This document shows, piece by piece, positions 35,308-63,985 of a stretch of 64,000 nt of DNA. The stretch lies in the sequence record MH221129.1, one strand, 5' to 3'. The notes under the pieces are model-generated. The model was not told the origin of the DNA. It worked only from the letters and a program-made list of their open reading frames with translations, and made no database searches. The translations under genes and the position numbers were made by a program. How positions within the stretch are numbered: position 1 is the stretch's first letter; the number at the start of each line of letters is the position of its first letter.

Positions 35308-35345
35308 GGCTCTCTTCCACTATGGAATGGGTATCATACCAAGGC

Positions 35346-38537: not shown

Positions 38538-38921
38538 TTAACTTGCGTCGTGTGGGACGGTCACCCACTCGTGCCATTTCTCCGAGTACAAACGGTAGGC
38601 CATTTTCGGGTTCTGGTCGACGCTGCCTGCCGGGTTATCGTTCCACAACGTGTACGAATACAGCTCGTACGACGAAGTACCACGTATACTCGAAGTGCGG
38701 GTCACGTAATACGTGACGCCGCGTTGCAGGATGTGAAGGCCACCGTAATGTTCGGTGACCATGTAGTAGTGAAACGCCTGGTTAATCGTGGCGTCGGTGC
38801 ACAGCGCTTTAGCGACGTCTTCTACGCCGGGATATGCCTTTAGAATGTTTTCGAGAAAACTTGCTAAGGTCAGCCCGACATAGGGCGGCGTTGGCGCGGC
38901 TGGAAGCGGCGGAGTGAGCAT
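38538..38921 (-). CDS. Hypothetical (likely virion) protein
   Basis: 127 aa, SD TAAGGA with TATG upstream; the start lies inside the helicase 3' end. Confidence 0.6.
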   Translation of the reverse strand: MLTPPLPAAPTPPYVGLTLASFLENILKAYPGVEDVAKALCTDATINQAFHYYMVTEHYGGLHILQRGVTYYVTRTSSIRGTSSYELYSYTLWNDNPAGSVDQNPKMAYRLYSEKWHEWVTVPHDAS

Positions 38922-40515
38922 GTGATTTCCTTACAACATAAGGGGAAGTGGCAATCCGGAAAGACAGCACGACATCCCGTAATGATTTCTGGCGTGCATT
39001 CAGGTAGTTGCAATGCTTCGGTACGTTATACGCATGGAACAGCCATACGGTCGGGTCTATTTCACCCCAATCGTTGTGCAGAATCTTACGTGGACGACCG
39101 GCCATCTGTTCGTTCAGTTGCTGGTCTTCGACAGGGGTGCTGATGTACATGTGTACCAGCCCCGGCTTATCGACAGCAGTCCCCGCTTTCCCTGGTGTGG
39201 AGATAGAGAAGTCTGCCAAGATAAAGTCGTCATACGAATCCCCTGCATTATACTTCGCCACCATTAACGGGTGGAATTTAGGGTCGCGTGACAGTTTATC
39301 TTTCACATACTCGGTAAAGAACTCGCACATCGCCACCGTAGCAAAGAGTATCAGGCATTTCTGACCAGCCTGATAGTTCTTCAGGAACGTTTTCTCGATG
39401 ATGTCCCAAATCATATCCCCGTACGTGATGTGAAGGTTCTCTTTAATGAGTTTCCCTTCGAAGAGTTTGTGGTTGTACGGCGTCATCTTCGACGCCCACC
39501 ATGCAAACTTCTTATCATCCAGTCGGTAATACAACGCTTTGACATCCACCACCGGAATAATCGGAATACTGATACGATAGTCCGGAGGGAAACGTTCTTG
39601 ATAGCGCTCAGCAATGAATGCCTTGCTGCTGCCTGGTTTCAACGTCGCAGACATTTCGATCGATGCCGGCGGGTTTAACATAATCCCTGCCATGTACACC
39701 AGATGGAAATGTTCGTGCACTTCATCCATTGCTACCAGACCCACACCCAAGACATCATAAAAGGTGTCCAGGTCGACCGGGTTGGTTGCAGCAGTATTAA
39801 TGTACTCTTTCAGGAAACGCTGGAGTGTAACTGTAGGTAGGATAATGACTTTTATTCCTCTACGGTCTAGCTCCCCAGACTGACCCATCTCCAGTGCCTC
39901 GTAGACAGCCTGTACGCCCGTACAAACCAATACTTCGTCACGGAGGATACGTAGTCCCGTTTCATCGTCGCACACGTCAAAAATCCATTTAGGCACGTAG
40001 GATGGGCGGTGGATTAATGCTGTGCGGGTTCCGCGGCGTACCATCGACTTCATACACGACTTGGTCTTACCACGGCCGGTCTGAATAGCAAAAATGGTCT
40101 GCGGGCGGTCGGGGTCAGAAGCAGCTTCTACCACTTCGTTCTGATAAAAGAAACGTGACTCCGGATTGGTTTCCACCATCGAAAAACCGTAATTGTCAAA
40201 CGTGCACTGATACGGCTTTTGACGTTCTGGGCGATGTTCCAGAATCCGGTATTGGAAACCGTACTCGATGCCGGCACGCTGGATTATCGCGCGAACGCGA
40301 TCGGCCCACATCTTGTGGAAAATGAACGTGCGTAATGACGGGATATGTGCGTAGTACGGATCACCACGTTCCGTCGTAATGCGGCCATGCTGCTTACCCA
40401 TCTTGGGAGCGTGCATATTCTCCTCGGCCCACGCGAGGATGGCTTTTTCAGCCTGGCGGATAGGGACTTCAATCCGTACCCCCATACTCGTGTAGGTCAT
40501 GTGAATGTCTATCAT
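38809..40515 (-). CDS. SF2 (UvsW-like) helicase (phiKZ gp75-like)
   Basis: Walker A QTGRGKT, DEVH, SAT, Q..GRPR. Confidence 0.9.
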   Translation of the reverse strand: MIDIHMTYTSMGVRIEVPIRQAEKAILAWAEENMHAPKMGKQHGRITTERGDPYYAHIPSLRTFIFHKMWADRVRAIIQRAGIEYGFQYRILEHRPERQKPYQCTFDNYGFSMVETNPESRFFYQNEVVEAASDPDRPQTIFAIQTGRGKTKSCMKSMVRRGTRTALIHRPSYVPKWIFDVCDDETGLRILRDEVLVCTGVQAVYEALEMGQSGELDRRGIKVIILPTVTLQRFLKEYINTAATNPVDLDTFYDVLGVGLVAMDEVHEHFHLVYMAGIMLNPPASIEMSATLKPGSSKAFIAERYQERFPPDYRISIPIIPVVDVKALYYRLDDKKFAWWASKMTPYNHKLFEGKLIKENLHITYGDMIWDIIEKTFLKNYQAGQKCLILFATVAMCEFFTEYVKDKLSRDPKFHPLMVAKYNAGDSYDDFILADFSISTPGKAGTAVDKPGLVHMYISTPVEDQQLNEQMAGRPRKILHNDWGEIDPTVWLFHAYNVPKHCNYLNARQKSLRDVVLSFRIATSPYVVRKSHAHSAASSRANAALCRADLSKFSRKHSKGISRRRRRR

Positions 40516-40529
40516 GCTGCCCCTCTTAC

Positions 40530-40556
40530 AAAAAAAGAGGGGCGCGTGGCCCCTCT
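40530..40556 (-). terminator. Intrinsic terminator after nvRNAP beta'-C, overlapping an anti-SD
   Basis: AGAGGGGC-CACGC-GCCCCTCT then TTTTTT. Confidence 0.8.
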
Positions 40557-40559
40557 GTT

Positions 40560-42665
40560 TTATACTGTTATCTTCACTGTTGCCATTAAGTCATCGTACA
40601 ACGAAGCAGGAATCTCACGCTCGGTATAGAAGCCGACGCGATCGATATTGTTCTGCTGGCCTTCGAACAACAACATCGGTAACGCTGAACGAACACTGAT
40701 GAGTGTATTGTGGTCAACAAACCGTTTCCCGGTGGCCTTGGTAGCTTCTTCACTGTCGAAGCCAACCGCTGGGAACGGATTGGTTGGTGACTCCACACGG
40801 GAGATAGCCAACATGATTGCAATGTGCGTCATCGGGATGCCGCTCAGCTTGCGTTGGATGTATTTGAACGTATCCATCAGTGCATAAGTACACTGTTTCT
40901 CCGTCGCACCACCCATTTCTACCAACGTTACTGGTTTAATACGCCCCTGTTTCTTATTCATCTTCACAGTGGATGCCGTGTTGATGATTTCCACAATGTC
41001 TTCGTTCTTGTCTGCGGCGATGGAACGGATTTTGGTTTCCAGTCCTGCCACAAAGTCAGCCATCGACTCAGAACGGTTCGTGTAGATAAGAATCGGGTGT
41101 TTCGGATTCCACGCCTTCAATGGAATGTGTACCAGTTTCTTCACGCTGCGAATCGCATCGCGTTGCTTCAGGAAGTAATGCAGGAACGGTTTGGAGAAGT
41201 TCCCGCATACGCCCATGCGCACGTCAATACAATCTTCAGCGAGCAGTGACCCATTTGCATCGTAACGCTGGAAGGCCAAGTCGGTAATTTCCGGTAAAGC
41301 CGTTTCATCGATAGCGTCGAGATCTTCATGATACGCAATCTGGCTGAGTTCCGAATACACTTTATCGGTAACAACGAGTTCGTATTCTGGCCAAGTACCA
41401 CGTTGTGGTTTCGGTAACAAGCACAACCCTTTGAGAGAATTGTGTTTGTACTCGGTCATATACTCACGCATTCCCGGTGTCAGGATAAGGTTCAGCAGAT
41501 AACGCAGGAAGTCAAGGTGCTTCGTGGACAAAATCCCTTGAGTACCTTTCTCGGAGATAGATGTGGATGCCAGGTGACCCGGTGACGTACCTTCGGAGAG
41601 GTTATAAATCAAGTCTCCCATACAGGTCGCACAGATGGACTGGTTCGCCATCTCATTACAGGTCATTGCACTACGGAAGACGATCGGTTTCCCAACCAAA
41701 TCCGCATACCCATCTTTCTCAAAACGCAGCCATGGGCCGTTGTTGCCTTCCAGGCGATAACGCATCCCCACCATCGCCTTATACGCACGCTCGTCGAGCT
41801 TGGTATCTTTAAAGGTGTAATGGTGGGCGTGCGTAGTACCGCAGTCCTCGTACGTGAAGTACATCAACACGTTAGCAGCTAACTGCAGCTTACGTGACGC
41901 GTACTCTGCTTCGGCAATCTTATCTGTGTTATACAGATGCGAACGCGAAGTAGCACCGGACTCTTTCAGGCGACTGATGACAGAATGCATCCCAGTAAAG
42001 AAGCCTTCCCACACCTGGTTGGTGTAGACGCGGGAGTCAATCTCTGAGGTTTTCCCACGTACGAAGGCTTGCAGCACCTGGTTCATCTTAATGGTTCCGT
42101 CCAGTACGGACATGACCACCGGATTATACTTCAGTGCTGGGTCTTTAAAGATGGCTTCGATCAGCTGATATGCATCTTCAACCTTATCACGTCCTTCTTC
42201 ATCATAACCGGTCGGATATTCTTTCTCCCACTGGCGAATGATTTCAAAGTTCGGATGGTCGTAGATTTCCATCATCGTGTCATAGTCGATTGTCGTGCAG
42301 TATGCCAGCAAGTTTTTCACTGTCATGTTGAACGCATCGGCGTAGACATGTTGACTCAGGATATAGCGCGTTTCTGCCAGGTCAACCCCGGCTTTACGGG
42401 CCAGCACCGCAGCTTCGGACATAAAGTCCAGATGGAGGTCGTCTGTGGCCACCTGATTCGGACGATAAGCCATCGTGGATGGCGTCGGTACCTGTGGATA
42501 CAGACGCGAGACCCCCCAATATGGCCAACTGAGCTTGATGTGTCGCGACGACATCTCAATAGATTTGCCATCGTCAAACGTGACGTAATAACGACCACGC
42601 AGTTTCCACACCTCATCAGATGTGAGCGTGCGCAAATCGCGCACGTGGACAGAACGACCCGCCAT
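40560..42665 (-). CDS. Non-virion RNAP beta' C-terminal subunit (phiKZ gp74-like)
   Basis: EYASRKLQ, DCGT, RSAMTC..ICATC, GHLASTSISEKGTQGILSTKH (trigger loop). Confidence 0.9.
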   Translation of the reverse strand: MAGRSVHVRDLRTLTSDEVWKLRGRYYVTFDDGKSIEMSSRHIKLSWPYWGVSRLYPQVPTPSTMAYRPNQVATDDLHLDFMSEAAVLARKAGVDLAETRYILSQHVYADAFNMTVKNLLAYCTTIDYDTMMEIYDHPNFEIIRQWEKEYPTGYDEEGRDKVEDAYQLIEAIFKDPALKYNPVVMSVLDGTIKMNQVLQAFVRGKTSEIDSRVYTNQVWEGFFTGMHSVISRLKESGATSRSHLYNTDKIAEAEYASRKLQLAANVLMYFTYEDCGTTHAHHYTFKDTKLDERAYKAMVGMRYRLEGNNGPWLRFEKDGYADLVGKPIVFRSAMTCNEMANQSICATCMGDLIYNLSEGTSPGHLASTSISEKGTQGILSTKHLDFLRYLLNLILTPGMREYMTEYKHNSLKGLCLLPKPQRGTWPEYELVVTDKVYSELSQIAYHEDLDAIDETALPEITDLAFQRYDANGSLLAEDCIDVRMGVCGNFSKPFLHYFLKQRDAIRSVKKLVHIPLKAWNPKHPILIYTNRSESMADFVAGLETKIRSIAADKNEDIVEIINTASTVKMNKKQGRIKPVTLVEMGGATEKQCTYALMDTFKYIQRKLSGIPMTHIAIMLAISRVESPTNPFPAVGFDSEEATKATGKRFVDHNTLISVRSALPMLLFEGQQNNIDRVGFYTEREIPASLYDDLMATVKITV

Positions 42666-44902
42666 TATTTCTTCTCCCTAATTGGACGTACTAACTGGAA
42701 CCCTTCACAAATGTGGATGTTACGAATCATCCTGTCGATTTGTGAATCCCCCAACGGCATCTTCTTGCGATCGATTAGCACACCCGGATTGGTAGGTGTT
42801 TTGGAATTGAACATTCCAGTGACGATTGCGCGATGCACGGCTGGGTTGTTGGCACGGTCATGCGTTTCCGGGAAGTTACCCGGACCGAAACCGTCCGTCA
42901 GTCGCTGCTCTGACGGCCCGCCCCATTTCAGGGATTTGAGGTTGATAGGATAAGAGCCACGCCCTTGGTTGGATGCATCAATGGAACCCAGGAAGTTCGT
43001 ATACATGGACGAGATACTGGAGAACTCACGGCCGGTTTTATCCAGACGCAACGTTTCCACACTCCCCACGTAGAACTGGTTCTTGGTCCACTCTTTCTCA
43101 CCCTGATAGTTTGTGATCAGCAGCTTGGATTTACGCGGTGCATATTCTCCTAAACGCTGGCAGATTTCCACCTGGGTGTCGTCCAGTTCGTGCGGCAGCC
43201 AGATACGGATAGTGAAGTCGTAGATCTCTTTGAAGAGTTCTCGCTTCGCTTCTACCGTGTTGTGGCTGGCGTTCAAATAGAACGTCCACTTCGGGTTGTA
43301 CCTGTCGATATAGTCCATCAGGATGGACCACGCTTCCTCTATCTGACCTGCAGCCAAAATCGGTTGCAGACGCATCTTCAACTGTTCCGATGCCGCAGAC
43401 CAATACATGTGGAACAGTGCAGCGTAAGTGGAGCGACGAATTACAGCGTTCATGGAGCGAATAACATGCACCCGTTCACCGAATTCGTTAATCGGCATTT
43501 CGTGGTCTGGGCGAACTGCACCCACAATACCCTTTGTACCAGAGCGGTCGGTAATTTTCGAAGACACGGTGACAGGGATTGGATAGCGTACCACGATGCG
43601 AATGGTATAACTGCCAATTGGGTCCCAGAGCCCACGTTGTACCGGTTGCGCCAGTTTGTTTAACACGTTCTTATCTGCAGAACGGTTGTACTCACCTTTG
43701 CGCATGGCTTCTTCGTATTCTCGACCAATCTCTTCACGAAACTCACTATAGACTTCGTAAGTTTCTGAGGAGAACGCTTTGTCCAGGATCTCAAACGCTT
43801 TCGGTGACCAGACAATGTTCTTGTCTTTGGACATTGCGAAATAGAAACGCACCACGTCATTGTAGAAACGTTTTAGTGCATTAGCGTAGTGATCTAACTC
43901 GCGTTTGTTCTCTTCGGTACATGCAATGTTGTTGGTACCGCGATCGCATTTGGTTTCATCACGCCACACCTGAATATCTACCACACGAGAACCCGTTAAG
44001 TCCAGCTTCTCAATGTCGTTTGCCAGGTTTGCTTTGTAATGTTCCGGGTCAGCGTCCACATATTCGCAGCGATCGAAATGCGGCGAAGCGTGTTGCGTTT
44101 CCCCCACATGTGAATCGATGGCTGCCCACAACTTATCGAAACGTCGTGCCGCCAGCACCAACCCATCATCACGAACGGCTTTACCCACTCCCGGCATGTA
44201 CTGCGGACGACGGGTGCCATCAAGTTGCGTTGTCCCGTAGATATCCAGCAAATACTCATCGTCACGCAGAGTGAAGTCGATGATGCGAATACCACTGGCG
44301 TGCATGGATGCCGCTGCAGTTTCAGAGAGAGTGTAAGAATCCTCAATGATGTCCGGATGCGACATCGTAACTGTTGGCAAGCTCACACCATCCACAAACT
44401 CGCCGTCCAGCTGAGCAGGCAATGTGGTAAGCATTTCATCTTTCTCTAACTGCTGCGTCTGTCCACGAAGCAACGCCTGCAATTTACCTGTCGGAGATTT
44501 ACGCGACGAGAAGATGTTGTCATGCGAGGTGTAATAGTTAATGTCAATTACATCAATCATGACTTTGCGCTGATTGGTTAGTTCCGTGCGCTTAAAGAAA
44601 ATCACATGCTGACGCGGATCGTGGTCACCCTCACGACCATACCGCGCAAATACTGCTGCCCGAGTAACACCTTCTTTCGTCGTATAACTACATACCGTAC
44701 CGCTATCCTCAACTATGTCGTTAAAACAATAGTCATGGTAGTTCACATCCGCACCAGTAAAATGTGCGGACGGTTGTGGCTCATCAAGCGGCACCGCCGA
44801 CTTCATATGTCCACCTACCATCGAGGCACGTGCCCCAGATACTCCAGTGATGTTCGTCTCACGGTCAGCAACACTTGACATGAGTTCGACTGGTGTTTTC
44901 AT
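42665..44902 (-). CDS. Non-virion RNAP beta C-terminal subunit (phiKZ gp71/73-like)
   Basis: RASMVGGHMKSAVP, KITDRSGTKG (K..R.G.KG), LRLDK. Uninterrupted. Confidence 0.9.
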   Translation of the reverse strand: MKTPVELMSSVADRETNITGVSGARASMVGGHMKSAVPLDEPQPSAHFTGADVNYHDYCFNDIVEDSGTVCSYTTKEGVTRAAVFARYGREGDHDPRQHVIFFKRTELTNQRKVMIDVIDINYYTSHDNIFSSRKSPTGKLQALLRGQTQQLEKDEMLTTLPAQLDGEFVDGVSLPTVTMSHPDIIEDSYTLSETAAASMHASGIRIIDFTLRDDEYLLDIYGTTQLDGTRRPQYMPGVGKAVRDDGLVLAARRFDKLWAAIDSHVGETQHASPHFDRCEYVDADPEHYKANLANDIEKLDLTGSRVVDIQVWRDETKCDRGTNNIACTEENKRELDHYANALKRFYNDVVRFYFAMSKDKNIVWSPKAFEILDKAFSSETYEVYSEFREEIGREYEEAMRKGEYNRSADKNVLNKLAQPVQRGLWDPIGSYTIRIVVRYPIPVTVSSKITDRSGTKGIVGAVRPDHEMPINEFGERVHVIRSMNAVIRRSTYAALFHMYWSAASEQLKMRLQPILAAGQIEEAWSILMDYIDRYNPKWTFYLNASHNTVEAKRELFKEIYDFTIRIWLPHELDDTQVEICQRLGEYAPRKSKLLITNYQGEKEWTKNQFYVGSVETLRLDKTGREFSSISSMYTNFLGSIDASNQGRGSYPINLKSLKWGGPSEQRLTDGFGPGNFPETHDRANNPAVHRAIVTGMFNSKTPTNPGVLIDRKKMPLGDSQIDRMIRNIHICEGFQLVRPIREKK

Positions 44903-45329: not shown

Positions 45330-46697
45330 TTAGAGCCGTGCAGACCCGAATGGTAAGTTGGTGAAGTTATCACCACCGCCACCGAGAACATTGCTCGACC
45401 CGCCTAACCCACCGCTACCACCTAGCAGATTGTTGCTCCCGCCCAGCTGGTTATCAGTTCCCCCGAGGATGTTACTGGAACTTCCCAGCAAACCACCACC
45501 CAGTTCGTTTTGTTTCTTCTCTACCGCATTACCACGAATCGCTTCTGCCAGAGACAGCTCATTGATGCTGTTCTTCGGCATTTGGCCATTGTTTTCACGC
45601 AGTGTACGTTGGAGCGCAGGCGGCAATGCATCAAAGTTATTCGATGCAGTTTGCTGCTGTGCTTTCTTCGCACGGAAGAAGTTTACCGGATCGTCGAGAT
45701 CGACTTCCTGCTTCGGTGCACTTTCCGATGCCAAACGTTGCGTCAACGCATTGTTGCCCGTTGGGGTACGTCCGATACGGAAGTCAGAAGCGGTGGTATC
45801 CGTTGCAGAATCGTTGCGTGGACCCGTGTTGTACGGCAGCGTTTGAATCACGTTGTCATACACCGCCATGTTATCCAGCTGACCAATCCACTCTTCTTCC
45901 AGTGGACGCAGTGGGGTATAGTCGCGTAAACCGCGCACCACCAGGTTATAGTTGGTCACGTATTGTGCCCAACCGCGTGCCAGTGAGCCAAAGTACGGAC
46001 GTGGGTCGTTAGAACCCACCACGCTCGGATACCAACCGAATACCGCTGTCAGCAGGTTAAATAGAATTACCTTATCCTGCTTACGCTGGAGTTTCGCGCC
46101 GAAGAACGTTGCAGTACCGTCGAGAGATTCTTCTTCAAACATGTGCTTGTAATTAGCCACACGGATGAACTTCGTTCCATCGATGGCCATATCGCTGGAG
46201 ATGAAGATGCTGGTAATCTTCGTCTTTCTGTCTTCCTGCAACAGACCGTACACGTAGTTCTTCACTGCGTTCCAGCTCTGCACCAATTTCTTGTCCATGG
46301 TTGGATCTTTGATATCGGCACAGACCACGTCGCTAAGGAACTTCTTGTACGCCGCCAGACGGATAGTCTTCCCTTCCGCTGCTGTTTCCAGAATGGCATC
46401 GATTAACTCGAAGCTTTTCAGGAACAGGTTAGCGTTGATAGACTTCTTGAGGAAACGAATAGTACCCGATTCCCCTGCCAGCACCGATTCACACAACGGA
46501 TGGAAAGCATGACATTCGCTGCCATCCTCGTCTTCCATCCCGTTCTTAATCATGGTGGCAGTAGGAAGCGCCAGGCGGCGCTTCACTTTATTGTAGGTGA
46601 ACATGGCCGGGACGTTTCCGTCTTGTACCAGCAAGTCACCGTCGAACCCGTAGCCCAGCGAGGTCAGGAACGAGCGATAGAACTCATTAATCTTCAT
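45330..46697 (-). CDS. Nucleus-associated core protein (phiKZ gp70-like)
   Basis: 455 aa between PicA and nvRNAP beta-C; C-terminal LGG repeats. Confidence 0.65.
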   Translation of the reverse strand: MKINEFYRSFLTSLGYGFDGDLLVQDGNVPAMFTYNKVKRRLALPTATMIKNGMEDEDGSECHAFHPLCESVLAGESGTIRFLKKSINANLFLKSFELIDAILETAAEGKTIRLAAYKKFLSDVVCADIKDPTMDKKLVQSWNAVKNYVYGLLQEDRKTKITSIFISSDMAIDGTKFIRVANYKHMFEEESLDGTATFFGAKLQRKQDKVILFNLLTAVFGWYPSVVGSNDPRPYFGSLARGWAQYVTNYNLVVRGLRDYTPLRPLEEEWIGQLDNMAVYDNVIQTLPYNTGPRNDSATDTTASDFRIGRTPTGNNALTQRLASESAPKQEVDLDDPVNFFRAKKAQQQTASNNFDALPPALQRTLRENNGQMPKNSINELSLAEAIRGNAVEKKQNELGGGLLGSSSNILGGTDNQLGGSNNLLGGSGGLGGSSNVLGGGGDNFTNLPFGSARL

Positions 46698-46709
46698 GGT
46701 TAATAATCC

Positions 46710-48437
46710 TTAATCTAATAGACCTTTGCCGAGGCTACCGCCACCGAGACCGCCTAAACCACCCATCCCGTTATCAGACGGAGTGTCCAGACCGCCCAGT
46801 AAACCACTACCCAGTCCACCTGTGCTCGTTGGCACGTTAGACAGAATACGGTTACGGCCGTTTCTTTTCTCGTAGCTATTATAGCCTTCTTCAACGGCGG
46901 TCAGCAGCGTTGCGGTGTTCTGCGCCAGCTCACCCACGTACAGGAGATCGGTGGTGTTACCGGTATGCAGACGGAACTGCATGAACGAGGCGTAGGTGTA
47001 ATATTCTAATGGCTCGTCGTCGACACGGATTTCCACACGGATAACCGTACCCAGCAGGGCTTTAACCAGCATGTGACAACGAATATGGTTGTGCTTCGTT
47101 ACCTGAATCATTGCTTCGCTTAGATTCTGATAGAAGCGGCGACCTAACGCCTGCGGTAATTGACCATGAGTCAGACTACCGATGGACTCAGGCAGAATCT
47201 GCAGCGTAGGTTCGTTCATGATATCCACATTACGGTTATCGTAAACGAAGCTCACTTCACCCAGCAGGTTACGGGACATAATCGAACCCAGCATCATCGC
47301 CAGGTCGTACGACACCAGTGAACCTTGAGTAGAGAAGCCGTTCTTACCAATCCAGTGGTCAGTTTGTGAGGTCAGGCCCATACCCAGGCCACGGCGTGCT
47401 GCCATGGACAGAGAATCGGAGATGCACTCTGTCAGACGCAGTGGGTTGGAGATTGCGTCGCGCAGATCACGAAGACGGAAAGTAGCTTTGCTGGTTGTTT
47501 TCCAGCCACCGGAAACATCCGACATGTTATTCTGCAATGCCTGGCGCATCGACGAGATCAGTTCGTGGTTGCTGAAGTTACGAATAACGCCACGCTGTTT
47601 CAGTTCGGATTCGACCCCAATGGAGTTGTTGCCCGCAAAGAAACTTTCCACGCTACCCAGCTCAGTGTCAATACCGGAGCTGGCCAGATATGCATTACTG
47701 ATTGCCGATACATAGTTTTCCGGACGGGTTAACTGCGACACCATTAGTTGTGGGGAAGAGTTAGAGGTGGCGGACAGAATTGAATCTTTCGTCGGCACGT
47801 ACTTCTCACCGGTGTTCAATTCAATACGTTTTACCATGTCAGCCGCTTTCGCGATCGAAATGATGTCCACCGCACTTTCTACCTGACCTTCAACTGACAA
47901 TGCTTTCGACAGCACGTAGTTGTCCAGCAAGCGATACGAGTTAGGGTTCAGTGTACGTCCACCAAACGCATCATGCTCGTACGTTGCCTGCATCCCGTAA
48001 ATGTCGTTAATGTACAGCACCATATCGTCCGGTAACATCCCGCTCAAGCTCTGCTCTGCCTGACTGGTGTAACCGGAGATAATGTATTGCGTTTCCTGCG
48101 TACGGGTCGTATTACCAGCCAGTGGCTTAGCAATCAATACCGCAACAAAGTTAAAGATACCGGTGTCGCGGGATTCGTACGCAAACTGAACCGGGTTCGC
48201 GTCATCGTCCGATACGTTAATGAACGGACGTTCGAACCCATTCTGGCCACCGTCGAAACCGACGATGCCTGATAATGCTTGTTGATACTGCGGTGTAGAC
48301 ACCGCTTTTTCCCCGCCCAGTTCAACCGCTGCTGCCAGGTCATCCAGAGCACCAGTCGAAGCATTGAAACCAATACGACGACGAACTTGCTCAGGAACAT
48401 CATAGACCGGGTACATTTGTAGATTTACGAGTTGCAT
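46710..48437 (-). CDS. picA: Nuclear import factor PicA/Imp1 (phiKZ gp69-like)
   Basis: 575 aa directly downstream of the gp68-like subunit in the chimallivirus core block. Assignment rests on synteny and size. Confidence 0.7.
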   Translation of the reverse strand: MQLVNLQMYPVYDVPEQVRRRIGFNASTGALDDLAAAVELGGEKAVSTPQYQQALSGIVGFDGGQNGFERPFINVSDDDANPVQFAYESRDTGIFNFVAVLIAKPLAGNTTRTQETQYIISGYTSQAEQSLSGMLPDDMVLYINDIYGMQATYEHDAFGGRTLNPNSYRLLDNYVLSKALSVEGQVESAVDIISIAKAADMVKRIELNTGEKYVPTKDSILSATSNSSPQLMVSQLTRPENYVSAISNAYLASSGIDTELGSVESFFAGNNSIGVESELKQRGVIRNFSNHELISSMRQALQNNMSDVSGGWKTTSKATFRLRDLRDAISNPLRLTECISDSLSMAARRGLGMGLTSQTDHWIGKNGFSTQGSLVSYDLAMMLGSIMSRNLLGEVSFVYDNRNVDIMNEPTLQILPESIGSLTHGQLPQALGRRFYQNLSEAMIQVTKHNHIRCHMLVKALLGTVIRVEIRVDDEPLEYYTYASFMQFRLHTGNTTDLLYVGELAQNTATLLTAVEEGYNSYEKRNGRNRILSNVPTSTGGLGSGLLGGLDTPSDNGMGGLGGLGGGSLGKGLLD

Positions 48438-50217: not shown

Positions 50218-50871
50218 TTAGATGAAGCTATCAAAGTCGTCGTTGGTAGATGGTGGTGCCGATTGCTGCTGACCGCCCTGGTAACCGTTACCGCCGCTGC
50301 GGTTACCGCCGCCATAACCACCTTTGCCGTAATTGCCGCCGCCAGTGTTGTTGAATTCACGCGCTTTATACTTCTCTTCGAGGTTCTTCAGGAACAGCTC
50401 AAAGTTATTGATAAAGGCACGAGCACAACGTTCAGACAGTTCGAGGTCAGAAACTTGCTGACCATCACGGAAGATACGGAAGCCTTTCGGGTAAGAGAAG
50501 TAGAACTTCTTCTGGCGTGCGCCAACGCCTTGAATTTCACCTGCAATTGCCATGAAAGGAACAAGGTTGTCTTCACGACCAACAATCACACTCACCGGCG
50601 GCTTGTTGCCGTTTTCGTTGCTGAACTTCACCATGCTCTTTTCATTTTTGCGCAGGCAGTCTTGCAGCGCTTCAATGATAGTGCGGCACACAGTGATCGG
50701 TGCGGAGAAATACAGACCTTCGCCTTTGCCGAAAGAGTAGCTAAACTTCATGGACTCAACATCACCGTTAAAGTCATTCGGTTCAATATTGAGTTTACGA
50801 GTGCGGTTTTGCTGATCCGGTTCGGTTTGCGGATAAAGCCATTTGTCTTTGAAAATTTCTTGGTTAATCAT
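50218..50871 (-). CDS. chmC: Nucleus-associated nucleic-acid-binding protein ChmC (phiKZ gp67-like)
   Basis: 217 aa; folded N-terminal domain, G/N/Q-rich tail and acidic-aromatic tip; lies immediately upstream of the gp68-like gene. Confidence 0.7.
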   Translation of the reverse strand: MINQEIFKDKWLYPQTEPDQQNRTRKLNIEPNDFNGDVESMKFSYSFGKGEGLYFSAPITVCRTIIEALQDCLRKNEKSMVKFSNENGNKPPVSVIVGREDNLVPFMAIAGEIQGVGARQKKFYFSYPKGFRIFRDGQQVSDLELSERCARAFINNFELFLKNLEEKYKAREFNNTGGGNYGKGGYGGGNRSGGNGYQGGQQQSAPPSTNDDFDSFI

Positions 50872-54442: not shown

Positions 54443-55034
54443 AGCACGTAGCGCCGAGTTCTGAACAGGGATCACCATCTTCCCAGTCGAACGCGGACAT
54501 ACGTGCCCAGTTCAATTGAATATCTACTTTGTCAATACGACTCAGTCTGACAGCACGATCTTCATTGGTAGCCCATTGCCAAATCTTATCTTCGTCATAC
54601 TTGGTCGAAATGCCAGAGGTCGCTTCGCGGAAGTTATCATCGGTACGCATGTACGCATTACCTTTGAAGATATCCAGCTGCGAGAAACCATTCTCATAAC
54701 CACTTGCCATACCTTCGTTATACAGCTTACGATATTCCGGCATTGCAACGAGGAACGGTTGTAAAGCTGGGTTCGCGAATTGGAACTCACCCAGGTCTTC
54801 AATCTGTCGCACCATCTCAACCGCATCGTTATAACGCAGTTTACGAGCAGTGCTAAAGGTTTCGCGGAAACGCTCCAGTGACAGTAGTTCTTGACAATGT
54901 TCTTTAACACGCCCGACGAGATCGGGTGCCAGCGCGTCTAACGAAAAGTTATCTTTAAACAATTCGAATACGCCGCTACCTTCACCTTGTCTCGTCCAGA
55001 CCGTGCTGCCCTGTGACCACATGCCATCGATCAT
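54441..55034 (-). CDS. Chimallivirus core protein (phiKZ gp59-like)
   Basis: 197 aa, SD AGGAG, C-terminal GDPCS, follows beta'-N. Confidence 0.6.
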   Translation of the reverse strand: MIDGMWSQGSTVWTRQGEGSGVFELFKDNFSLDALAPDLVGRVKEHCQELLSLERFRETFSTARKLRYNDAVEMVRQIEDLGEFQFANPALQPFLVAMPEYRKLYNEGMASGYENGFSQLDIFKGNAYMRTDDNFREATSGISTKYDEDKIWQWATNEDRAVRLSRIDKVDIQLNWARMSAFDWEDGDPCSELGATC

Positions 55035-56744: not shown

Positions 56745-58607
56745 TTACAGTTTGAAGCTGCCCAGAGTAACGCCCAGATCGTAGTCGCTACCGCTCGCAG
56801 ACAGGCCAGTACCAGACAGAGTGAAGTCTTCCCCACCGTTGTTGAAGAACAGGGAAGTCGCCATCGTGTTGTAGGCGTTCACACCGGTCATAGACCAGGT
56901 GCAGTGCTTACGTACGAAGTCCAGCAGGCATTTCGCGAACACCGGGTTAATCGCCATATCCAGAGATTCACCAGTAGTGGTAGGACCTTTGGAAGCGAAC
57001 AGAGAGGCGGCCAGCTTCAGCATGTAGATACGCTGAGCACGGTTGCCAAACTCACGGTGAGAGTAGGACTGTGCGTTCAGGTAGGTGTACACATCGTTCG
57101 CGTTGTCGCCGAGTTTGGTTACAACGGAGATGAGGTCCATATCCTGGAAGCTACGTTTCTGTGCAGTACCGGTGTAAACACCAGACACAGTTGGTACCGC
57201 AGCTTTAACGACGTGACGGCACTGGATAGTACCATTGTAATCGTTACCCAGCGCTTGTTTCAGCGCGGCAGCGAATTCCGCCGTGAAGCTGGTCTCTGCA
57301 ACAACTTCGCCCTGGCCGTTACGCGGGGACATACCGTTCAGGATTGCGAGCAGCTGTTTCAGAGAGTTGTCGTTACCGACTGCGATTTCAGACAGCATAG
57401 TAGACAGACCACCCAGGCCGTTACCGGCGCGATGGCTAACCACCAGTGCTGCTTCACGCGGTGCGAACATATCCAGGCAACCTTCGATAGCTTCTTTGCT
57501 ACCGTCGATTTTGGACACGTCAGGACGCGCATCAGCACCCCAGGACAGGTATTCTGCCACACGGGAGAACTTACGGTCAGACTTGTTCAGACGTTTCATG
57601 AACAGGTCACGCCAGCCGCCGATAGCCGCGATTTCCGCGAAGGAAGCCAGCATCATCAGCTGACGTTCGAACGGTGCCAGAGAACCTTCCGCCTGAGAGT
57701 CGACCAGGCTTACCACGATTTCAGCCTGCAGCTGTTTCAGGTCGTAGACGCCGTTGTTAACTGGCTTCTGACCGGTAAAGCGCATGTTGATGAAACCGGT
57801 ACCGTGAACACGCGGGTACAGTTGAATCTGGCTGTTATCCAGCAGAGTCGGAGTAGCCGCATCGGCGTTGGTCGGAGTGTGTTCCAGGGTGATAGCAAAG
57901 TCAGCACGTTGTGCGTGACCGTTACCGTCGATTACAGCACCTTCTTCCAGCGGCATCACAGATGCATTGAAGCGATCGGATTTACGCAGACGCATTTCGC
58001 CCAGGTAACCAGAGATACGGCCGAAGATGCCGAGCATCATCTGACCCATCAGCTGACGTGCCCAGGTTTCGTTCAGCTCTTTGCCCAGATCCGGCACAGA
58101 GTTGATGGACATGTAGTTTGCGTTCGGCAGGTTGTGAGTTGCCATGATGTTAGCCTGAATCACTTTCAGGGTTTCATCGTTGAACAGCTCAGTGATGGTG
58201 TAGTAATCTTCCTGCGCGCCGTTAGACACTTCTTTCAGGCGCAGAGACTGGCCACGTTCGAAGAAGATGATACCGTACAGCCAATGGCCTTTGTATTCAC
58301 CAGCAACGTATGCCGCAGAACCCATCTCGCCACCTACGCCGGTAGCGGTGCCCCAACGGAAACGGTTGAGGTATTCGTTGTTCTTACGCATTTCGTCCAG
58401 CAGACTGACGAAGTGAGTTGCGTAAGAGTTAATGTTACGCCAGCCGAAAGAGCTGTCGAAGGAACCTACGTTGGTAACACCGGCGACGTTTTGAGCAGGT
58501 GCAACAGTTTCGTTACCCAGTCCGCCCAGACCAGCTGCAGGCTGCTGAGTAGTAGTAGTAGTCTGCTGAGAAGCGCCGTTGTTGTTATCGTTCACAACTT
58601 TAACCAT
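56745..58607 (-). CDS. chmA: Chimallin, major phage nuclear shell protein (phiKZ gp54-like)
   Basis: 620 aa with low-complexity N-terminal arm and extreme codon bias; directly upstream of beta'-N; two early promoters upstream and a terminator downstream. Confidence 0.85.
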   Translation of the reverse strand: MVKVVNDNNNGASQQTTTTTQQPAAGLGGLGNETVAPAQNVAGVTNVGSFDSSFGWRNINSYATHFVSLLDEMRKNNEYLNRFRWGTATGVGGEMGSAAYVAGEYKGHWLYGIIFFERGQSLRLKEVSNGAQEDYYTITELFNDETLKVIQANIMATHNLPNANYMSINSVPDLGKELNETWARQLMGQMMLGIFGRISGYLGEMRLRKSDRFNASVMPLEEGAVIDGNGHAQRADFAITLEHTPTNADAATPTLLDNSQIQLYPRVHGTGFINMRFTGQKPVNNGVYDLKQLQAEIVVSLVDSQAEGSLAPFERQLMMLASFAEIAAIGGWRDLFMKRLNKSDRKFSRVAEYLSWGADARPDVSKIDGSKEAIEGCLDMFAPREAALVVSHRAGNGLGGLSTMLSEIAVGNDNSLKQLLAILNGMSPRNGQGEVVAETSFTAEFAAALKQALGNDYNGTIQCRHVVKAAVPTVSGVYTGTAQKRSFQDMDLISVVTKLGDNANDVYTYLNAQSYSHREFGNRAQRIYMLKLAASLFASKGPTTTGESLDMAINPVFAKCLLDFVRKHCTWSMTGVNAYNTMATSLFFNNGGEDFTLSGTGLSASGSDYDLGVTLGSFKL

Positions 58608-63492: not shown

Positions 63493-63540
63493 GACTGGCC
63501 CCTTGGTTAGTCCTCTGCTATAAGACTTCCCGGAAACGTG

Positions 63541-63574: not shown

Positions 63575-63985
63575 TTAACCGGCCACGTTGTCGATGATTT
63601 CAAAATCGACATCGTTAAAGCCCTTGGAGGCCAGTGCCAGTTTCAATTCATCGATTTCTTGCTTGTTATCGAGTGTAACTGTGAATCTAACAGAGACGCT
63701 CTCGATAATCTGCACGTTACGAATCCACGCATCTGCAGCAACCTTCGGCTTGCCGTCGGTACCTTTGAAGATGAGGTACGTGTATTTGTTCACGTTGTCT
63801 TCAGGTTGTGACACAAGCGAAGAGTAAATGTTCTTCTGCTCGGCCATGATGTCCTGATAACTTTTGGCCATCTCGTAGCCAGCGCCTGTGGCTAACACGA
63901 TAACACGCGTTTCTTGTCCTTTCAGCGGGGTGTCGTAAACGATGTTTACTTTCTGTCCCGCAACCAGGGTACGTACATCAAACAT
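63575..63985 (-). CDS. Conserved protein (phiKZ gp49 position)
   Basis: 136 aa, SD GGAGGAGG. Confidence 0.7.
   Translation of the reverse strand: MFDVRTLVAGQKVNIVYDTPLKGQETRVIVLATGAGYEMAKSYQDIMAEQKNIYSSLVSQPEDNVNKYTYLIFKGTDGKPKVAADAWIRNVQIIESVSVRFTVTLDNKQEIDELKLALASKGFNDVDFEIIDNVAG

Follow-up and report, generated by a model that had tools for sequence, protein, structure and literature searches.

The region considered here is a 64,000-nucleotide window of sequence record MH221129.1 (positions 62001-126000) from the Salmonella phage SPAsTU, an SPN3US-like Seoulvirus and a nucleus-forming jumbo phage, and its main subject is an RNA element of three segments (A, B, and C) at the junction between the gene for the beta'-C subunit of a non-virion RNA polymerase (nvRNAP) and that for a superfamily 2 (SF2) helicase. 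All genes relevant to the element are carried on the minus strand, and coordinates are those of the window unless another source is named. A beta-like RNA polymerase (RNAP) open reading frame (ORF; 42665-44902) is followed by the beta'-C ORF (40560-42665), which encodes 701 amino acids and ends at a UAA stop codon (40562-40560), and then by the helicase ORF (38809-40515), which encodes 568 amino acids from an AUG at 40515-40513. The window is 100% identical to phage STsAS and 82%-85% identical to SPN3US-type Seoulvirus phages.

The nvRNAP beta'-C label is sound because the 701-residue protein matches PHROG 3015 (RNA polymerase beta subunit; E 5e-237), shares 29% identity with gp74 of phiKZ (E 1e-44), and lies within a beta, beta', helicase gene order as in phiKZ gp71-73, gp74, and gp75. 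The helicase is placed among the SF2 (DExH) enzymes by its match to PHROG 16 (DNA helicase; E 6e-57) together with invariant Walker A (TGxGK), DEVHEH, SAT, and QxxGRxR motifs; it is the phiKZ gp75 homologue by position and gives a tblastn match to phiKZ-like Pseudomonas phages. Both gene names given in an initial annotation of this DNA, a phiKZ gp74 homologue and a helicase with DExH motifs, thus hold. A Pfam search recognised neither the beta' subunit nor the helicase, and PHROGs and conserved motifs were used in its place.

The layout that the initial annotation described was found again, base for base, on the minus strand between 40562 and 40513. In the RNA, the UAA stop codon is followed by AAC, segment A, a loop, segment B, six U, GUA, segment C, AGC, and the helicase AUG. 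Segment A (AGAGGGGC; 40549-40556) begins, as had been claimed, at the fourth nucleotide past the beta' stop codon and forms the 5' arm of a terminator hairpin, whose loop is CACGC (40544-40548). Segment B (GCCCCUCU; 40536-40543) begins 16 nt past the stop codon and provides the 3' arm; it runs into the terminator tail, a U-run (40530-40535) of six U, or seven with the last base of B. Segment C (AGAGGGGC; 40519-40526) comprises the helicase Shine-Dalgarno (SD) sequence GAGG, 6 nt before the AUG, plus GGC, which by sequence reasoning is unable to pair with the 16S anti-SD and is not needed there. A is identical to C, and each is perfectly complementary to B, again as originally described. B is common to both helices, in the one as terminator arm and in the other as an anti-SD, with the U-run serving as the loop of the B:C hairpin.

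The A:B stem has 8 bp, six of them G-C, a 5-nt loop, and a folding energy of -14.8 to -15.4 kcal/mol, and it is followed directly by seven consecutive U, counting the last base of the stem. Intrinsic terminators are defined by a G+C-rich stem of 5-14 bp, a loop of 3-8 nt, and a U-run immediately 3', and every one of these features is present, which bears out the earlier description of A:B as a terminator. In the related phage 201phi2-1, 132 termination sites have been mapped, and its polymerases stop at hairpin terminators in vivo (PMC11512511). The two possible pairings of B are nearly equal in their cores, at -15.4 kcal/mol for A:B and -15.2 kcal/mol for B:C. When extended, A:B gains A-U pairs with the U-run and reaches -18.3 kcal/mol, while B:C, once extended over 40513-40548, reaches -20.1 kcal/mol by taking in the 3' end of the terminator loop, two A ahead of C, the GC that follows it, and UG from the start codon. 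This extended hairpin is the predicted minimum free energy (MFE) structure, in a 101-nt context as well, and is computed to make up about 85% of the ensemble at equilibrium. This predicted fold has a stable helix that encloses the SD together with U and G from the AUG; hence, the claim that B:C hides the SD stands as an energetically competitive predicted structure, the extended form of which buries the AUG too. Rfam gave no matching family, the best hit reaching 20.9 bits (E 0.42), short of the gathering score of 50.

Junction sequences were compared among 12 distinct lineages in six genera: Seoulvirus (SPAsTU, pEa_SNUABM_29, and SPN3US), Erskinevirus (Asesino, Stratton, and EaH2), Machinavirus (ChrisDB, Huxley, pEa_SNUABM_8, and the genome L013), Wellingtonvirus (Wellington and the genomes L014 and L017), Derbicusvirus (CR5 and Derbicus), and an uncultivated group with 73% helicase identity. 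Segments were anchored by script; a MAFFT alignment put sequences with a 4-nt loop out of register. The A core, GAGGGGC, and the B core, GCCCCUC, are identical at all seven positions in every lineage. Within the C core, GAGGGG is invariant (six of seven bases), and the seventh base is C in nine lineages, U in two, where a G-U pair is kept, and A in one, where the pair is broken. The duplication of A as C, whose divergence among relatives would have spoken against a switch, therefore does not diverge across the 12 lineages, and B:C pairing is possible in all of them, through invariance. The parts in between vary: the loop (CGUGC, CUUGC, CAUGU, CUGC, AUCU, AGAU, ACCC, and UCCG in relatives), the spacer from the stop codon to A, that from the U-run to C, and that from C to the AUG. 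Identity of the flanking 150 nt falls to 0.59-0.63, and helicase third-codon identity to 0.24-0.36, which amounts to saturation. All relatives with at least 55% helicase identity possess the same three segments; the next tier, at 31%-33%, has a different terminator and no C repeat. The difference in folding energy (B:C minus A:B) ranges from -7.2 to +4.9 kcal/mol among the 12 lineages and lies within 2.5 kcal/mol in nine of them, and only the Wellington type clearly favours A:B, by 3.5-4.9 kcal/mol.

A separate point concerns the helicase start in Derbicus, whose annotation (L019:2489-2503) places it at a GUG within segment C (GUGAGGGGC); in CR5 and every other relative, the helicase starts at the AUG 12 nt further downstream. 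Judged by that comparison, the annotated start is probably wrong.

Five other syntenic terminators in six of the same genomes served as controls. All five kept their hairpins but changed their stem sequences, and hence terminator function alone does not freeze a stem; likewise, three of them (T35378, T54434, and T63568) are followed by SDs that differ between genera, and hence SD function alone does not freeze an SD. Taken with the invariance of the cores, the comparison supports selection on the three-way complementarity of A, B, and C. This is good indirect evidence in which pairing is inferred from invariance, and selection on B:C itself is not proven, because invariance yields no compensatory changes. 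The absence of change in any segment across six genera would follow if its role as SD fixes C, complementarity to C fixes B, and complementarity to B fixes A.

Several features beside the control terminators were noted. Wellington (L028:12314-12359) and CR5 (L029:10735-10779) have another terminator, syntenic with window positions 54434-54419, that has converged on an AGAGGGG...CCCCUCU stem, with no downstream repeat and with ordinary GGAG or GAGG SDs. A TATG-centred motif (GGTATGATACCC; about 35330-35345, minus strand), immediately behind the terminator at 35378-35363, is kept in all six genera upstream of an operon with a virion-RNAP subunit gene, and by its sequence it looks like a phiKZ-type late promoter. 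A second motif (GTCTTATAGC; about 63515-63530, minus strand) follows the terminator at 63568-63551 upstream of the DNA polymerase gene. It is conserved in Seoulvirus, Erskinevirus, and Machinavirus, takes a TTATAG variant form in Wellington, is missing from CR5, and is a possible early or middle promoter. In the SPAsTU annotation, the DNA polymerase gene begins at 63612, about 42 codons ahead of where the SPN3US gene starts, which puts the start within the preceding gene and makes the ORF span the terminator; this start is probably misannotated.

The rarity of the arrangement was gauged in 214 kb (85%) of the SPAsTU genome, from which hairpin-plus-U-run terminators were collected and, for each, the longest perfect complement of the 3' arm within the next 56 nt was recorded. 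Among 56 terminator-like hairpins, that of the present element has a complement of 9 nt, and all others have 6 nt or fewer (39 below 5 nt, 14 with 5 nt, and two with 6 nt). The device is thus a one-off at the beta'/helicase junction and not a general phage design; a recurrent genome-wide design was rejected on this count. The second-best case (L045:42982-42999, minus strand; SPAsTU record 54982-54999, outside the window) consists of GGAGACC-UUCG-GGUCUCC followed by an AGGAGA SD before an AUG, and its complement is only 6 nt long. GAGGGGC occurs four times in the 64-kb window, three times within the element, and it is under-represented in the 214 kb as a whole, with nine copies on both strands against about 25 expected from base composition. 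A 7-mer triple (X, its reverse complement, and X again) with the spacings of the element appeared anywhere in the window in four of 60 Markov resamples; the resampling used the 7-mer, and the 8-mer triple should be rarer still. The element is non-random.

The reading that we favour, and to which we give an even chance of being right, is that a leaky intrinsic terminator follows beta'-C and that its 3' arm, segment B, also serves as an anti-SD that limits how much helicase is translated from read-through mRNA. As the sequence suggests, the phage polymerase would transcribe A, the loop, B, and the U-run, A:B would form, and a fraction of transcripts would end at the U-run with A:B left as a protective 3' hairpin. 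The helicase would then be made from read-through transcripts, a dependence suggested by the lack of any visible promoter-like motif in the interval from B to C: the motifs of TATG and TTATAG type that are kept after other terminators were both absent there, as judged by inspection and not by a dedicated promoter-motif scan. A sigma-70 promoter scan was disregarded because the phage uses its own polymerases. Within read-through RNA, B is predicted to pair with either A or C, the cores being isoenergetic and the extended B:C, which covers the AUG, being slightly favoured in most lineages. Because transcription in this phage family takes place in ribosome-free compartments, the mRNA would meet ribosomes only after export, near folding equilibrium; at that point the helicase ribosome-binding site (RBS) would be mostly masked and translation from read-through mRNA held low. 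Segment A would act as an internal competitor, so that opening the RBS would have a net cost of about 2 instead of about 20 kcal/mol, and the balance between A:B and B:C would set the level of helicase translation. The termination decision itself would be untouched by C or by ribosomes.

Several points weigh against a leaky terminator with an anti-SD arm. Four RNA-labelled runs with part of the SPN3US locus yielded nothing mapped on that locus, and compensatory changes, sought in IMG/VR, GenBank phages, and JGI metagenomes, were not found. The computed energies suggest that masking would be weak in the Wellington-type phages, and ribosomal protein S1 or 30S standby binding on the U-rich loop could render the hairpin ineffective in vivo. 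The arrangement is also confined. In phiKZ, the same two genes stand in the same order, but the gp74 and gp75 ORFs overlap by 17 nt, with neither terminator nor repeat, where the SPN3US-like clade has the terminator/anti-SD element; pVa-21, a Vibrio phage with 31% helicase identity, and a metagenomic relative with 33% each have a terminator after beta', with a different stem and an ordinary, non-complementary SD. Since these three lack the three-segment form, sequence comparison indicates that it is an innovation of the SPN3US-like clade. Such confinement and the absence of covariation would also suit an ordinary terminator beside an ordinary strong SD, with B:C lacking any consequence in vivo and conservation arising from another cause. 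Many terminators here combine a G-rich 5' arm with a C/U-rich 3' arm and hence often match purine-rich SDs in part, 16 of the 56 having a complement of 5-6 nt, and the AGAGGGG...CCCCUCU stem stands at another terminator in Wellington and CR5 with no C repeat. This explanation is unlikely, albeit with a real chance of being correct, for it leaves unexplained why only this stem and SD are frozen while five control terminators and three control SDs drift and neutral sites are saturated, and why the GGC of C is conserved; the 9-nt complement, moreover, is a clear outlier. Were the pairing without effect, the strict invariance would need another explanation.

One candidate for such an explanation is that GAGGGGC and GCCCCUC are recognition sites of a sequence-specific factor, whether an RNA- or DNA-binding phage protein or a processing nuclease, which would constrain the sequence and not the structure. 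Strict invariance with no compensatory change is typical of protein-recognised sites, and ChmC-type phage mRNA-binding proteins exist in this family (PMC13282480); yet the motif is not used elsewhere, three of its nine copies lying here, neither an Rfam match nor a candidate factor emerged, and the idea appears improbable. A genome-wide binding motif was rejected in view of the under-representation of GAGGGGC. Even less credence attaches to a leader mini-ORF, for which A, left free once B:C forms, would act as the SD of a start codon in the loop, and translation through B and C, ending at the helicase AUG, would melt the mask and activate helicase translation. A GUG, UUG, or AUG does lie in the loop 4 nt after the GAGG of A in about half the lineages (pEa_SNUABM_29, SPN3US, Erskinevirus, ChrisDB, and L014), opening an ORF of 10-14 codons. 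The stop of this ORF overlaps the helicase AUG in pEa_SNUABM_29 (AUGA), falls 1 nt short of that AUG in Erskinevirus, and lies 4 nt inside the helicase ORF in SPN3US, whose spacer, longer by 3 nt, keeps the frame. The start is missing, however, from the window phage (ACG), Wellington, CR5, L011, and L013, the stop position is not conserved, the 4-nt spacing is short, and loop positions 2-3 resemble neutral drift. Because the window phage lacks a loop start codon, the mini-ORF is treated as a lead only. The logic proposed in the initial annotation was that of an attenuator, in which a ribosome at the beta' stop codon would cover A and block A:B, causing read-through and coupling helicase transcription and translation to that of beta'. 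A ribosome terminating with UAA in its A site reaches about 9-10 nt past the stop, and as A begins at the fourth nucleotide it would melt most of A:B. C, however, follows the U-run and is still untranscribed at the moment when the polymerase commits to termination; it can play no role in that decision, and B:C cannot serve as an antiterminator. Nor is the closeness of A to the stop codon special, since all five control terminators begin within a few nucleotides of a stop, a feature of the compact genome. An attenuator further requires a ribosome directly behind the polymerase, whereas the window encodes an orthologue of chimallin (ChmA), SPN3US and Asesino have been shown experimentally to form a phage nucleus that separates transcription from translation (reviewed in PMC13282480), and the virion polymerase carries out early transcription in the early phage infection (EPI) vesicle (PMC12571901). 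If a ribosome on A has any effect, it must therefore come after transcription, once read-through mRNA has been exported. With C past the U-run and transcription in ribosome-free compartments, the attenuator logic fails, and we regard it as barely credible.

A post-export effect of this kind might take the form of negative coupling, whereby ribosomes finishing beta'-C would melt A:B, pass B to C, and lock the helicase RBS. This extension of the favoured reading is more speculative and quite unlikely. If it were true, more translation of the RNAP subunit would mean less helicase output, the terminator hairpin would be at once a transcript end, a decoy, and a sensor of upstream ribosome traffic, and the three-way constraint would have frozen 20 of 21 core bases across six genera.

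Nucleus-forming jumbo phages would be unable to use the co-transcriptional, ribosome-dependent controls of ordinary bacterial operons. The leaky terminator with an anti-SD arm, placed where the genes for the phage's own RNA polymerase meet that for a core helicase, is a compact candidate, present throughout the clade, for post-export control of protein ratios within a polycistronic mRNA, and it suggests how a strand used by two helices can keep a terminator sequence from changing over great evolutionary distances.

The ChmA orthologue (56745-58607, minus strand), annotated as a 'hypothetical protein', has 620 amino acids and 78% identity to SPN3US YP_009153316, which is named ChmA in PMC10643120. 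As SPN3US orthologues, the genes from ChmA to the three-segment element match the phiKZ gp54-gp75 block by position; direct comparison covers ChmA and the gp74 homologue only, and the remainder were placed by position. Positional homologues of phiPA3 gp61 (ChmC), gp63, and gp64 lie at 50218-50871, 46710-48437, and 45330-46697, respectively. As to the phage itself, MH221128.1 (STsAS, 197 kb) and MH221129.1 (SPAsTU, 251 kb) are 100% identical over the 3.9 kb compared, and the two are likely one phage, or nearly so, differing in assembly completeness.

Among known systems, translational coupling by SD masking in polycistronic mRNAs, as for coat and replicase of MS2, offers a partial likeness to the element, in that the RBS of the downstream gene is closed by long-range or local pairing and its state depends on ribosomes on the upstream cistron. 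In classical translational coupling, the masking strand is inside the upstream ORF, so that upstream translation opens the RBS. Here, by contrast, B would be beyond the reach of the ribosome, which would instead melt the competitor A, and the predicted sign is negative. Dual-acting riboswitch platforms likewise join transcription termination and RBS masking in one RNA element. The present element differs from them in having no aptamer or ligand-sensing domain and no Rfam match, and in being intergenic and not located in a 5' leader.

The trp and his attenuators resemble the element in their mutually exclusive pairings among three or four segments, one of which is a terminator, and in the position of a ribosome near one segment. 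In those attenuators, however, it is the terminator's 5' arm that is shared, and its alternative partner lies upstream, forms first, and prevents termination, whereas in the present element the 3' arm is shared, and the partner C is downstream of the U-run, 9 nt past B. A trp-type attenuator was rejected on this geometry, C following B and pairing with the 3' arm. The trp and his attenuators also need coupled transcription and translation, against which compartmentalisation argues here.

The nearest precedent comes from the homing-endonuclease genes of T4, whose read-through transcripts carry hairpins that mask the RBS. For I-TevI, I-TevII, I-TevIII, and segB of T4 and mobE of the Aeromonas phage Aeh1, a stable helix buries the SD on read-through transcripts, which are poorly translated (PMC2988022). 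The T4-type switch includes a late promoter inside the helix that yields a shorter, translatable mRNA, whereas none was seen here between B and C; a T4-type early/late RBS switch was rejected for want of an internal promoter in that interval, which was judged by inspection with no dedicated scan. A further difference is that the masking strand here is the 3' arm of the terminator and that an upstream copy, A, competes for B. The structural part of the initial annotation is supported, and its regulatory logic is to be replaced by a post-transcriptional one. The element is a variation on already known kinds of RNA control.

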